A stretch of 63,365 bases of DNA, the filler included, from Octopus bimaculoides (lineage: Eukaryota), in assembly GCF_001194135.2 (NCBI RefSeq). It is 4 parts of 4 records of this genome, joined end to end, with 100 filler letters (N's around TTAATTAATTAA, not from the genome) between each part and the next. Parts side by side here need not be neighbours in the genome. Positions count along the whole stretch, not along the records: positions 46,041 to 62,247 come from NC_068983.1; 3 more parts are not named here. One strand, written 5' to 3'. The notes below the pieces were generated by a model. The model worked only from the letters and a program-made list of their open reading frames with translations, did not search any database and was not told the origin of the DNA. Both the position numbers and the translations under genes were made by a program. Below, one piece after another: positions 46,041 to 52,899 of this stretch. The stretch's first letter is position 1. Every line of letters begins with the position of its first letter.

Positions 46041-46299
46041 AGAGAGAGAGAGAGAGTGAGTGAGAGAGAGAGAGAGAGTGAGAGAGAGAGATGAATGAAT
46101 TTATATATACAAATTTCTGTTCGTCTGTCTCTACAGGCAAATGAACGGAGATGTATGTATGTATGTATGTATGTATGTAGGTATATATGTATGCATGCAT
46201 GTATGTATGTATGTATGTATGTTTGTATGTATGTATGTATGTAGGCATGCACGTATGCAACCATGTGTGTTTAATAAAAGTTCGGTCGGGAGATTTGGA

Positions 46300-46756
46300 A
46301 AGACAAGGAAAAAAAAAAAGCAATACGAAACAGCACAATGAAAGTGAAAGTAAAAGACGAACAAAGCAGGCTAAGAGAATCACATCGCGAATCAGAACCA
46401 CAACAAAGTCACAACAACCACTGCCGTCATAATTGTACCGGTGCAACCACCACCAATCACAACAGCCGCTGGCCAACGGAGAACTCTCTTAGCGGTCGCA
46501 CGCTCAGCCAAGTAGAAATAGCAACTAAATTCCCCTCCAACACCACTCTCGGGAGGAAGAAATATTTGAAAATGGAGTCGGAGGGAGGGAAAAACAAAGA
46601 TGTGATGGTCACAGTTGGGACGCTTTTGATATGTCAACACTGACTTGAGACCAAACAGCAACAATAATTAACAATCTCGTCTCTCTGTCTTTCTCTAAAA
46701 TGATGATGATGATGGTGATGTATCATCAAGATCGTCGTCATCGTGGTCGTGGTCAC

Positions 46757-46793
<37 letters not shown>

Positions 46794-46963
46794 GTCGTCG
46801 TCGTCGTCGTCGTCGTCATCATCATTAACTTCCGCTGTGGATACAATTGTTGTTATGTATATTACGTCTTTGTATGTTAAAATATGCTATAGTTGCTGCT
46901 GTTGTACTTATTGTTATTGTTGAGTGGCTGTACCGACTGTTATGGTTGGTGGGACACGCGGCT

Positions 46964-47018
<55 letters not shown>

Positions 47019-47019
47019 A

Positions 47020-47052
<33 letters not shown>

Positions 47053-47084
47053 GCCTTCCACAATAAATATACTTGCTCCTCCTA

Positions 47085-47119
<35 letters not shown>

Positions 47120-47596
47120 ACAGCAACTATTCAGGTCCACCACCACCAATACCCTCGCCGCCACCACCACTACCAGTTTCTACTTACAGTATACTGTTAC
47201 TGCCACTGCTACTGCGGTTAAATCTTCCTCCTCCTCCTTATCCTCCTTCGGCCATTGTGGCTATTGAACTCATCACTGCAACCACAACGACTGGCTGTTG
47301 ATGTTACTGCTGCTGGTTCTGTTGCTGTTGTTGTTGTTGTTATCACTGCTATTGCCGCTACTGGAGTCGTTGTCGTTCGTCTTGTTGTCGTTGTTATTGT
47401 TGTTGTTGGCGATGGCGTTGTAGCAGTAGTAGTAGTAGTAGTGGTTGTTGTTGTTGTGAATGCAAGTTCGATCGACGGTCGAAATTGGCCGCTGCCCGCC
47501 CGCTCGCCTGCCAGCCAGCCAGCCTGCCTGCTTTCAACAGTTAGCCGCCGAGAGCCGCGCAGGGCGCGATCCCCGACTCCCAAACCAAAAAAAAGC
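46300..47596 (+). promoter_or_regulatory. CpG-rich putative promoter/5' leader of the SNAG gene, interrupted by (TAC)n, (TAT)n and (GTT)n tracts
   Basis: Non-repeat CpG-rich blocks at 46380-46620 (CCAAT at 46453) and 47461-47596, the latter directly preceding an ATG in an A-rich context. Confidence 0.55.
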
Positions 47597-47705
47597 ATGC
47601 CTCGCTCGTTCATGGTGAAATGTGGAGTGAGACGGCGCTGTGGACTTCAGTCGTCACCCAACCGGGTGGATTCTGACTACCTGGAGGAGTACTTCCCCGC
47701 AATCA
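47597..47705 (+). CDS. First coding exon of a SNAG-domain transcriptional repressor (Snail/Scratch/Gfi/Ovo/Insm group): MPRSFMVKCGVRRRCGLQSSPNRVDSDYLEEYFPAI
   Basis: aaaagcATG start context. MPRSFMVK is a near-perfect SNAG motif (MPRSFLVK). A GTGAGT donor follows at 47706 after 36 codons + 1 nt, the short phase-1 first coding exon typical of these families. No zinc-finger exons are seen in the window. Confidence 0.82.
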
Positions 47706-49297
47706 GTGAGTTTCAAAACAACAAATATATGCGCATACACACTCCTATTATGTTTAATATATACAGCGCATTGCTCTCTTACCATTTATACTTACGAGTG
47801 TATGTATGTATGTATGTATGTATGTATATTGCATATAGGCTTGAATGCTTACGTACATACATACATACATGCATACATACAGACGTGCATGCATGTACGC
47901 ACACATTCATATGTATGTGTATGTGTGTGTGTATATATATGTATGTATTTATATATATATANNNNNNNNNNNNNNNNNNNNNNNNNNNNNNNNNNNNNNN
48001 NNNNNNNNNNNNNNNNNNNNNNNNNNNNNNNNNNNNNNNNNNNNNNNNNNNNNNNNNNNNNNNNNNNNNNNNNNNNNNNNNNNNNNNNNNNNNNNNNNNN
48101 NNNNNNNNNNNNNNNNNNNNNNNNNNNNNNNNNNNNNNNNNNNNNNNNNNNNNNNNNNNNNNNNNNNNNNNNNNNNNNNNNNNNNNNNNNNNNNNNNNNN
48201 NNNNNNNNNNNNNNNNNNNNNNNNNNNNNNNNNNNNNNNNNNNNNNNNNNNNNNNNNNNNNNNNNNNNNNNNNNNNNNNNNNNNNNNNNNNNNNNNNNNN
48301 NNNNNNNNNNNNNNNNNNNNNNNNNNNNNNNNNNNNNNNNNNNNNNNNNNNNNNNNNNNNNNNNNNNNNNNNNNNNNNNNNNNNNNNNNNNNNNNNNNNN
48401 NNNNNNNNNNNNNNNNNNNNNNNNNNNNNNNNNNNNNNNNNNNNNNNNNNNNNNNNNNNNNNNNNNNNNNNNNNNNNNNNNNNNNNNNNNNNNNNNNNNN
48501 NNNNNNNNNNNNNNNNNNNNNNNNNNNNNNNNNNNNNATATATGTATATATATATGTATATATATAACAAATAATCACATACATACACAAACATATACAT
48601 ACATACATACATACATACATACACACATATTCATACATACATGCATATTTATGTATATGTATTTATACATGTCAATGCCTATGTGTGTGATGTACACACA
48701 CACACATACACACACACGTATGCATACATACATATATGCATGTTTAAAGCCTTATTTTTTATTTTACTTAATTTTGCAGTATAATTAATGTTGTTTTTGT
48801 TGTTGTTGTTTAACCCCAGGTCATTTCTGGCTGTGGAAGCCTATAGTGCAAAACGTTCCAGGCACCACAAACAATTCTGTTGTTTTGGGGTTCTTTTTTA
48901 CTCGTTTTATTTTATTTTTTGGGGGAGTTAATTTATCTTGGATTTATGAATTGCATTTTTTTCTTTTGTTTTTTTTTATATAACTGAAAGGTTTGATTTA
49001 AGGGAGATTTGACTGCTGTTGTTGGCCTGTCGAGCACTACATTTAGGCTCCTTGTTGATTTATGAATGATGTTATTTTTTCTGCTGTTGTTATTGTTGTT
49101 CTAGTATTGTTGTTTAGTCCCGGTTCAGCCTTGAACCAGAGGAGCTCGTCTTCATCTTACGTGCAAGGAACCCAACGTGTCATTATCCCACAATTCATTC
49201 ATTCTTTTTATGACGTCGAAGAGTTATTTCGGGGAGATTTGGTTACTATTTCTAGCACAGGTCTTATTTCTGATAGTCTGATAATGTTTGTTTTTTT

Positions 49298-49394
<97 letters not shown>

Positions 49395-49420
49395 TACACG
49401 TACGTACGTATGTATGTATG

Positions 49421-49454
<34 letters not shown>

Positions 49455-51994
49455 TAAAAGAACACGATTAGAGTTTAAAGATACACCGTATTCGTATATA
49501 TGCGCGCATATAGGTTGTATGTGTATGACACGTCTAAGTCCGTGTGAGACCCCCGGCGTCCTGAATGTTATGATACCTAGATTCTAACGAATTCCTACAA
49601 CTGATTAATATTATGTAAGCATGTATGTATGTATATTCACACATGTGTATGGTTTCTATATATATATATATATNNNNNNNNNNNNNNNNNNNNNNNNNNN
49701 NNNNNNNNNNNNNNNNNNNNNNNNNNNNNNNNNNNNNNNNNNNNNNNNNNNNNNNNNNNNNNNNNNNNNNNNNNNNNNNNNNNNNNNNNNNNNNNNNNNN
49801 NNNNNNNNNNNNNNNNNNNNNNNNNNNNNNNNNNNNNNNNNNNNNNNNNNNNNNNNNNNNNNNNNNNACGGTTTAAACAATAAATTACCTGCCTCTGGAT
49901 GCCCTCTAACCAAGACGGTACCCACACAGGTGATTCTCAGGAGTGCCTCCGGATTTAAACATCCTCTGGTTGCTTGGATGCTTCAGACTACCCCTGAAGG
50001 ATTGAGGCAACCCTATCATTTACCTATATATATATATATATCTGTGTGTGTGTGTGTGTGTGTGTGTAATACATACATATCTGTACGTTTATTATATAAT
50101 GTATGCGTGATTGTGTGCAATGAAGATCGTCCACTAGCCGCCACCACCACCACCACCACCACCACTATCACCACAATCACCAGCATCGCTACCGTCATCA
50201 TCATCTTTATCATTAATATTCAAAATATTAATATCTATCAGAGTTATTCATTGTTGTTGTTGTTGTCGTCGTTGTTCAAGACGGAGAACTGATAGACTCG
50301 TTATACTGTCAGAAAGTAAAATACCTTGTGGTATTTATTCCGGCTGTTATTATACTAATCCAAATCCCACCGCTATGTGTGTCCCCCACTCCACCGTTTG
50401 ACAACCGTCGTTTGCGTGTTTACATCCCTGTAACGTAGCGGTGTGGCCAAAGAGATCGAGAGAATAAGCATCAGACTTAAAAAAAGAAAAAGAAGACTGG
50501 GGTTGATTCATTCGACTAAAAACTCTTCAAGGCTGTGCCCCAGCATGGTCGCAGTCTAATGAATGAAACAAGTAAAAGATGAAAAAATCCTATTCTATTT
50601 AGTTGTAAAAATCACAAACACACACATACATACGAAACGATCACACACACAGTCACATATGCTTTCATACATGTACACGCACACACATACATACTCACGC
50701 ATGCAAATCGATTTACCACACCCTCTTTGAATTCTTTTATAAATACTTCTCTATTTTCATAGGATAATGTACTTGTGATGTAAACTGACATTTGTTTCTG
50801 TATTGTCCTTGTGGCAAATAAAAGAAGCTGACATTATTATAATCAAGATCAATGTCCCAGTAATAATGGTTTCAAATTTTGGAACGAGGCCGACAATTCT
50901 GGGGACGAGATTAAGTCGACTACATCGATGCCAGTGCTCAACTGGTACTTATTTTATCGACCTCGAAAGGAATGAAAGGCGAAGTCGACCTCGGCGGAAT
51001 TTGAACTCAGATCGTAACGTCAGAAGAAATGATGCTAAGCATTGTGTCTGGCGTGCTAACGATTCTGCCAGCTCTCCGCCTTACAATACCAGTGATAATA
51101 ATGTTTGTTTATTCTATAAATACCCCGAAACTTTCTTCTTTTGCTCTAAACAGAGTGACTTCTTATGCAGATCCGTTTGAGCAGCATTATAGCGCCTAAC
51201 CCCGGCAAAGCAACGCACTGGACACAGTAGTGTAAGCCACAACATAGATACATCAAAATTAGTTCTATAGACCAGTGGGGGTCTGGGTTACTGCCCAGAG
51301 GGCTCTGTTTATTTGTCTATTTATTTGTTCCCTCTCAGAAGAAGAGATTCTTTCTGTTCTAGTAATTTCTTTCCTCAAACGTCTGTCTAACGAAACTCCC
51401 TTTCTTCTTCTTTCCTTGATAAATATAACATTCTTTTTTAAAAATTTGTTGCTGTGTGATAAAAAGTTTGCTTCCCAACCACATGGCTTCCTCACTGCAT
51501 GGCACCTTGGACAAATGTCTTCTATTATAGCTCGGCCCGACCAAGGCCTTGCGAGTGAATTTGGTAGACGGAAACTGAAAGAAGCTCGTCTTGTGTGTAT
51601 GTGTGTTTGTCCCTCACCACCGCTTAACAACTCGTGTTGGTGTGTTTACGCCCTCGTAACTTAGCAGTTCGGCAAAGGGAAGGTAGAATTAATACCAGGC
51701 TTAAAAAACGTACTGGAGAAGAATCGTTTGGCTGAAATTCTGCAAGGCGGTGTTCCAGCATGGTCGCAGTGTAATGACTGAGACAAGCAAAATGATAAAA
51801 AAGATAATTTTCTGATTTTTTTTACAACTTCTGATTACATTCCCCTGCACACACGCACTTTTTTTGCGGTTCCCAGCGCACCATGTAGTTGTTTGAGCTC
51901 TGTTTTATTGTCGGTTACTTGTCCTGCGTGTAACTTTCATCAAAAGAATAATGCAATCAACCTCACCTTTACCACGAGTTTATATCAGTATGAC

Positions 51995-52074
<80 letters not shown>

Positions 52075-52659
52075 CTATCGTAATTATCATCATTGTCTTT
52101 ATTACTGAGTATACAGCTCAGAAAAAGATAGATAGATAGAGAGAGAGAGAGAATGGAAGAGAATACTTGCCCTTGTCAGTAAGGGCACTCTGGGATTCTG
52201 ATTGGCCCCAGGTGATTGTAGCTGTACTGGGACCTTTCCAATTCTATTTTCTTTGAGGATGTTGCGTTTTTATAGTTGTTTATTCTCATACCTGATTTTA
52301 TATATCAGTTCCCAGCCTTTTGCTTATTTTGGTAATTTATTCCTGTGATCCCCTTGCTAACGTGGAAGAAAATACCTTCAGACCAAAAGCCACCCAGTTT
52401 AACTCTGTTCTTCATCTTTTAGGTGTTAAATACAGCTTCGATATAGTTACCTGTTCCACTCTAAAACAGGTGGCCTTGTGCCAATATTAGATACAATTAT
52501 TATTATCTTTATTATTAAAATATACTTCATTCTTTATATTGTATACCATGTAGATTGGTATTTAATTTCTGTTATTTAATTTCTCTCATACCATTCTATG
52601 CAAATCTTCACTCTTTAGGTCCGTCTTTGTAGTGTACTCTTCATCCGTCATCCAGGAGA

Positions 52660-52750
<91 letters not shown>

Positions 52751-52899
52751 GGATTTCTTTATCAACCACAAGAGTTTACATTAAGAAAAATATTATGGCC
52801 AGTATAGGATAAAGCAAAAGAATGTGTGTGTGTGTGTGTGTGTTGTGAGGGTTTTGCGTGTAAAAATACTGACAAAAGTTTTTTTAAAATCAACAACGT

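Follow-up and report, generated by a model that had tools for sequence, protein, structure and literature searches.

As a short open frame in Octopus bimaculoides DNA begins with the residues MPRSFMVK, a form of the SNAG motif, the locus raises the question of whether this frame is the start of a gene and, if so, to which family that gene belongs. The window, by which we mean the whole stretch of 63,365 nucleotides that was analysed, is made up of four genome parts joined with filler, and the frame lies in the part taken from NC_068983.1 (46041-62247). An earlier note had proposed here a hidden first exon of a SNAG zinc-finger repressor, placed downstream of an incomplete UNC5 gene and perhaps nested within it; the SNAG first exon stands, and its hidden state, the UNC5 nesting and the supposed oddity of its sixth residue (Met6) do not. 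Going by computed gene models, the frame is very probably the first coding exon of the octopus Gfi-1/Senseless/PAG-3 orthologue, a SNAG-type repressor. It is an ordinary gene start in a textbook family, and it is already contained in a public gene model.

Anatomy of the exon and its surroundings

The ATG, read in the sequence in the context aaaaaagcATGc with A at -3, is the first in-frame ATG downstream of a stop at 47219, with none in the leader upstream of it. It opens a frame of 36 codons that translates to MPRSFMVKCGVRRRCGLQSSPNRVDSDYLEEYFPAI (108 nt, followed by an extra A at 47705), of which residues 1-8 form the SNAG core MPRSFMVK. The match to the loose pattern MPR[SGA]F[LM]V[KR] runs directly from the initiator Met and includes Pro2 and Lys8, and both of the gene models considered below begin there. 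The A that ends the exon opens a split Lys codon, and the GTGAGT donor behind it matches GTRAGT at six of six positions. The ATG, the 36 codons, the donor, its phase of 1, the GC-rich leader and an enclosing nonsense ORF of 439 aa had all been described in the earlier note, and every base agrees.

The 439-aa ORF (47255-48574) is a mechanical call that encloses the exon between a (GTT)n-type microsatellite upstream and a (TGTA)n microsatellite downstream, the latter followed by 192 X residues from an N gap. Upstream of the exon, 1.5 kb of DNA (46041-47460) consists almost wholly of tri- and tetranucleotide microsatellites, with (AG)n, (ATGT)n, (TCA)n, (CTA)n in about 30 copies, (TAT)n and GTT-rich tracts, and these open long frames without meaning on either strand, such as 47218-47613 on the minus strand. 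In a genome this rich in microsatellites, mechanically called ORFs are misleading.

GC content reaches 0.60 over 47441-47640, compared with about 0.33-0.41 in the flanks. The CpG observed/expected ratio is 0.95 at the exon, barely above the 0.74-0.82 of the flanks, and singles out no CpG island at 47597-47705. Within the leader, a candidate splice acceptor sits 57 nt 5' of the ATG (Table 1) and, should it be functional, the SNAG exon would be exon 2, after a non-coding exon 1. In vertebrate GFI1 the coding start lies in exon 2, behind a non-coding exon 1.

Downstream of the donor, no exon 2 or further exon was found in 46041-62247, where the O. vulgaris and Argonauta proteins match nothing beyond aa 36-37, and no C2H2 finger motif was found in any frame of the same interval. 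As no other exon lies in the part, intron 1 is at least 14.5 kb long, and such a length is consistent with the extent of the whole gene, 136 kb in O. vulgaris and 106 kb in Argonauta. Scans of the rest of the part against Pfam and Rfam and for tRNAs gave no match, and a repeat search within the intron gave N-run and microsatellite artefacts only. The intron is rich in microsatellites and contains seven N gaps, and since every one of these gaps is bordered by TG/TA-type microsatellites, simple repeats are where the assembly breaks; in principle, one of the gaps could conceal a short exon. Two families of dispersed elements also lie in the intron, of which the three-copy one matched no tRNA or Rfam entry and is probably a SINE-like octopus repeat.

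Table 1. Features of the part from NC_068983.1, with positions counted along the window.
Feature	Position	Strand	Basis or remark
GC-rich 5' leader or proximal promoter, Kozak-like aaaagcATGc	47441..47596	+	GC content; transcription start site putative
Candidate 3' splice acceptor AG (ctgctttcaacAG; cctgcctgctttcaacAG/TTAGCC)	47539-47540	+	70% pyrimidines upstream; acceptor use putative
Coding part of the very probable first coding exon, octopus Gfi-1/Senseless orthologue	47597..47705	+	Sequence, translation, gene-model identity
5' splice site GTGAGT of intron 1, phase 1	47706..47711	+	Sequence read
Start of intron 1 (at least 14.5 kb, runs off the edge of the part)	47712..62247	+	Translated comparison and motif scan
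Seven N gaps, ~2.1 kb in total	47962-48537, 49674-49867, 54541-54961, 55495-55538, 56298-56859, 57596-57692, 59461-59685		
Dispersed element, ~130-170 bp, 3 copies	50870-51082 (+), 58893-59024 (+), 61700-61917 (-)		Intron 1; copies 75-88% identical
Second dispersed repeat family, more diverged	50376-50586, 51604-51802, 56989-57067		Intron 1; 72-82% identity

Octopod gene models and the family of the gene

By a phmmer scan of 1.84 billion representative proteins with the exon peptide, we identified a single true match, the 635-aa O. vulgaris protein CAI9720440.1 (P0001; E 6.8e-16), whose residues 1-36 are 100% identical to residues 1-36 of the peptide. The three other matches (P0002-P0004) were repetitive proteins aligned to the Arg/Gly/Ser-rich middle of the exon and were regarded as noise. 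CAI9720440.1 corresponds to UniProt A0AA36F1P7, comes from the chromosome-level assembly GCA_951406725.2 and carries 'AA' as its only name. With tblastn, its residues 1-36 were placed on 47597-47704 at 100% identity (E 5e-19), and the rest of the protein is absent from the part. Past exon 1 it reads FPAI/KNGIVF (...EEYFPAI-KNGIVFTAAAIPP...), and as Lys (AAR) is the split codon begun by the A at 47705, this model uses the same ATG and the same donor. The start at 47597 and the donor at 47706 that the earlier note had picked out are those of a public gene model, which bears out its short phase-1 first exon of a SNAG zinc-finger repressor; the word hidden has to be withdrawn, the exon being already the start of CAI9720440.1, though under an uninformative name and with a broken finger region.

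Searches of a word-indexed protein collection gave no match, either with a 40-aa exon query or with an alignment of artificial MPRSFLVK, MPRAFLVK and MPRGFLVK variants, and the index fails on queries as short as these; both negatives are uninformative, because the same collection holds Gfi proteins, including one with the identical N terminus, and many MPRSFLVK proteins. A search of PDB sequences with the 36-aa peptide likewise returned nothing at E<=10, which is uninformative for an eight-residue motif.

Among the matches listed for CAI9720440.1, the best non-self match is the 929-aa Argonauta hians protein Ahia01_000342100 (P0005; E 2.4e-163), which begins MPRSFMVKSGGKRKHSGVLDLSSNPSKLHSEYLEDYFATLRNGIVF (MPRSFMVKSGG). 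Its residues 1-37 were placed by tblastn on the octopus exon at 51% identity (E 7e-7), and the first exons of Octopus and Argonauta share the MPRSFMVK core and a Y-L-E-[ED]-Y-F at the exon end. The two octopod proteins are collinear, with 67% identity over the first 165 aa and further blocks downstream, and there is no gap between them at the exon 1/2 junction, where the Arg of Argonauta (A+GR) is again consistent with a split codon whose first base is A. Exon 1 is joined to Gfi-type fingers in two independent computed models, which are collinear across this junction; the O. vulgaris annotation draws on Iso-Seq and RNA-seq as well as on protein alignment and ab initio prediction (PMC10700109), and the two supporting proteins are both computed models.

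The C terminus of Ahia01_000342100 consists of four C2H2 fingers, which share 84% identity with fingers 3-6 of mammalian Gfi-1 over 113 aa. When the recognition segment was taken as the residues between the second Cys and the last His of a finger, the Argonauta segments of fingers 3 and 5 were identical to those of Gfi-1 and of a spider Gfi-1b-like protein, and that of finger 4 was equal to the spider segment and differed from Gfi-1 by Y for F. The family helices of fingers 3-5 (KRSSTLSTHLLIH, HQKSDMKKHTxIH and a third) are matched in the Argonauta model and do not lie in the part itself. Among the matches listed that are 84-91% identical over the fingers, all with an informative name are Gfi-1, Gfi-1b or gfi1a-b, the others being unnamed, and generic multi-finger ZNF proteins owe their scores to many repeated stretches of only some 55-60% identity. 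In the PDB, the structure of Gfi-1 fingers 3-5 (2KMK) scored best over a single stretch, with 169 bits across 81 aa.

The two models differ in how many fingers they contain, with four in Argonauta and, in O. vulgaris, one complete finger followed by read-through: CAI9720440.1 contains finger 5 and half of finger 6, and fingers 3-4 are absent. After ...SFQRK (residues about 490-635) some 145 of its residues are unlike Argonauta or Gfi proteins; Argonauta at that point goes on VDLRRHIDTNHHLH and then stops. The finger region of CAI9720440.1 is defective, apparently through a missed splice or a read-through in the annotation. More generally, fingers missing from the octopod models may be annotation defects, or may reflect a real loss of fingers 1-2 as in Senseless.

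Within the SNAG motif, Pro2, Arg3, Ser4, Phe5, Val7 and Lys8 are kept directly after the initiator Met, and the 20-aa vertebrate SNAG (SKKAHSYHQPRS) is not conserved beyond residue 8. Met6 and the Cys that follows the core had both been considered atypical. Met6 proved to be common to octopus, Argonauta and two wrasse gfi1ab proteins (P0120, P0075), with Leu6 in 32 other Gfi proteins among the matches listed, and on this comparison it appears to be a tolerated conservative variant within the Gfi family. Cys9 does set the octopus motif apart, being specific to Octopus among the sequences compared, with Ser in Argonauta and vertebrates. A full-text literature search found no paper containing MPRSFMVK, none on the SNAG domain in octopus and none on SNAG/Ovol phylogeny in invertebrates, and no paper on octopus Gfi was found in a literature search judged by titles and abstracts.

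Alternative origins of the exon

One alternative is that the exon is a chance ORF or a non-functional remnant, such as a pseudo-exon or the relic of a duplication, picked up by gene predictors but unused in vivo, and we consider this very unlikely. It is true that only microsatellites keep the frame open, both into the intron and back to the stop at 47219, and that the CpG ratio of the exon is scarcely above that of its flanks. However, the pattern M-P-R-[SGA]-F-[LM]-V-[KR] is expected by chance just 8e-6 times in the part (both strands, at the base composition of the part), or roughly once per 2.7-Gb genome, and because of this low expectation, together with a GC-rich leader before the motif and a consensus donor after it that fits GTRAGT in full, chance is no serious explanation. 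Between Octopus and Argonauta the ATG, SNAG core, length, phase and Y-L-E-x-Y-F are kept and the middle of the exon has diverged, and conservation of the ends alongside divergence of the middle argues that the exon is under constraint. Pro2 and Lys8, which are functionally required in GFI1/1B (10.1101/519090), are also intact. The exon could in principle come from a paralogous copy of the gene.

A real exon could also belong to a gene that is nested in an UNC5 intron or interleaved with UNC5, as the earlier note had suggested from UNC5-like exons reported upstream in its window, and inside 46041-62247 we found nothing supportive of this. The adjacency is artificial, as the window consists of unrelated parts joined artificially, and across the O. 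vulgaris (136-kb) and Argonauta (106-kb) loci, taken as the gene ±10 kb, this gene is the only one in the lists of called genes; nesting or interleaving is accordingly abandoned as extremely unlikely. That the exon starts a gene of another SNAG family (Snail, Scratch, Ovo-like or Insm) is close to inconceivable, even though the eight-residue core alone cannot separate the families and EEYFP loosely resembles the Y-[IV]-P near the end of OVOL exon 1. The fingers of the gene models that start with this exon are Gfi-specific, none of the named proteins among the 120 best matches listed is a Snail, Scratch, Ovo or Insm, and the SNAG-2 block of the Snail superfamily (PMC2688512) is not recognisable at residues 13-21. 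An OVOL-like reading, based on the Cys residues and a Y-x-P near the exon end, was dropped because CAI9720440.1 has Gfi fingers. The family, which had been left open between Snail, Scratch, Gfi, Ovo and Insm, is thus narrowed to Gfi by the fingers of the orthologous models, and the other four fall out.

Putative function and place within the Gfi family

As a Gfi orthologue, the octopus gene would most likely encode a sequence-specific repressor that recruits LSD1-CoREST, by analogy with its vertebrate relatives. The exon would supply the extreme N terminus of the protein with the SNAG hook Met-Pro-Arg-Ser-Phe-Met-Val-Lys, and the long phase-1 intron (at least 14.5 kb) would part it from the linker exons and the C-terminal C2H2 fingers. 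The SNAG domain is said to resemble the histone H3 tail (PMC9098437), and through this resemblance the hook would bind LSD1/KDM1A and bring the CoREST complex to the target gene. In GFI1/GFI1B the motif must be free at the N terminus, where a tag abolishes function, and either substitution, P2A or K8L, is enough to abolish both LSD1 binding and repression (10.1101/519090). Fingers 3-5 bind DNA in Gfi proteins (bioRxiv 10.1101/519090) and in the octopus protein would read the DNA target, predicted by the same analogy to be of AATC type. Expression in sensory or neural precursors is plausible in view of the biology of Senseless, PAG-3 and Gfi1 (PMC2889900).

Compared with vertebrate GFI1/GFI1B, the octopus and octopod proteins have the same N-terminal core (Pro2, Arg3, Ser4, Phe5, Val7 and Lys8) and a similarly poorly conserved linker, a D-Y some 25-28 residues from the start (compare ...PRSPGPDY), and C-terminal fingers in the octopod models that are 84% identical over 113 aa. 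They differ in that octopus has Met6 for Leu, Cys9 for Ser and no conservation of residues 9-20, the octopod linker is much longer and Q/H-rich, the Argonauta model has four fingers (3-6) rather than six, and the octopod introns are far longer, with the gene spanning 106-136 kb. The Snail/Scratch genes likewise have a short first coding exon. They share the N-terminal SNAG-1 core, a presumed LSD1 hook, with the octopus gene, which differs from them in its finger set and in being without the SNAG-2, SCRATCH or CtBP motifs (described in PMC2688512).

Drosophila Senseless and C. elegans PAG-3 have the same Gfi-type DNA-binding fingers as the octopod models. Canonical members of the Gfi family have six fingers, and PAG-3 has five. 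Senseless has four, without fingers 1-2 (PMC2889900), a layout that the Argonauta model matches; it differs from the octopod genes, where SNAG is present, in being without a SNAG domain (PMC9098437). The ecdysozoan homologues among the matches listed (two from Trichuris and one from a spider) have six fingers and are without SNAG.

In the 2004-2010 era literature consulted here, SNAG was assigned only to the vertebrate GFI proteins. As two octopod genera have it, the SNAG-Gfi combination is suggested to be older than the vertebrates, and from the sequences compared we consider it reasonably probable that the combination dates to at least the protostome-deuterostome ancestor and was lost in the fly, worm and Daphnia lineages, and that Met6 is a naturally tolerated variant of the LSD1 hook. 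Other invertebrate Gfi proteins with SNAG are very probably present in current protein databases already, and the octopod Gfi with SNAG is a small correction, not a discovery.

The practical gain lies in annotation, and the importance of the locus beyond that is little: the O. vulgaris 'AA' record and the Argonauta 'hypothetical protein' can be named as Gfi-1/Senseless orthologues, and the O. vulgaris model is flagged as truncated in the finger region. A lophotrochozoan Gfi with a SNAG hook bears on when LSD1-recruiting repression joined this DNA-binding domain. Vertebrate Gfi, fly Senseless and worm PAG-3 take part in the development of sensory cells and neurons, and because of these developmental roles of the family, octopus Gfi would be a reasonable marker for sensory and neural lineages.
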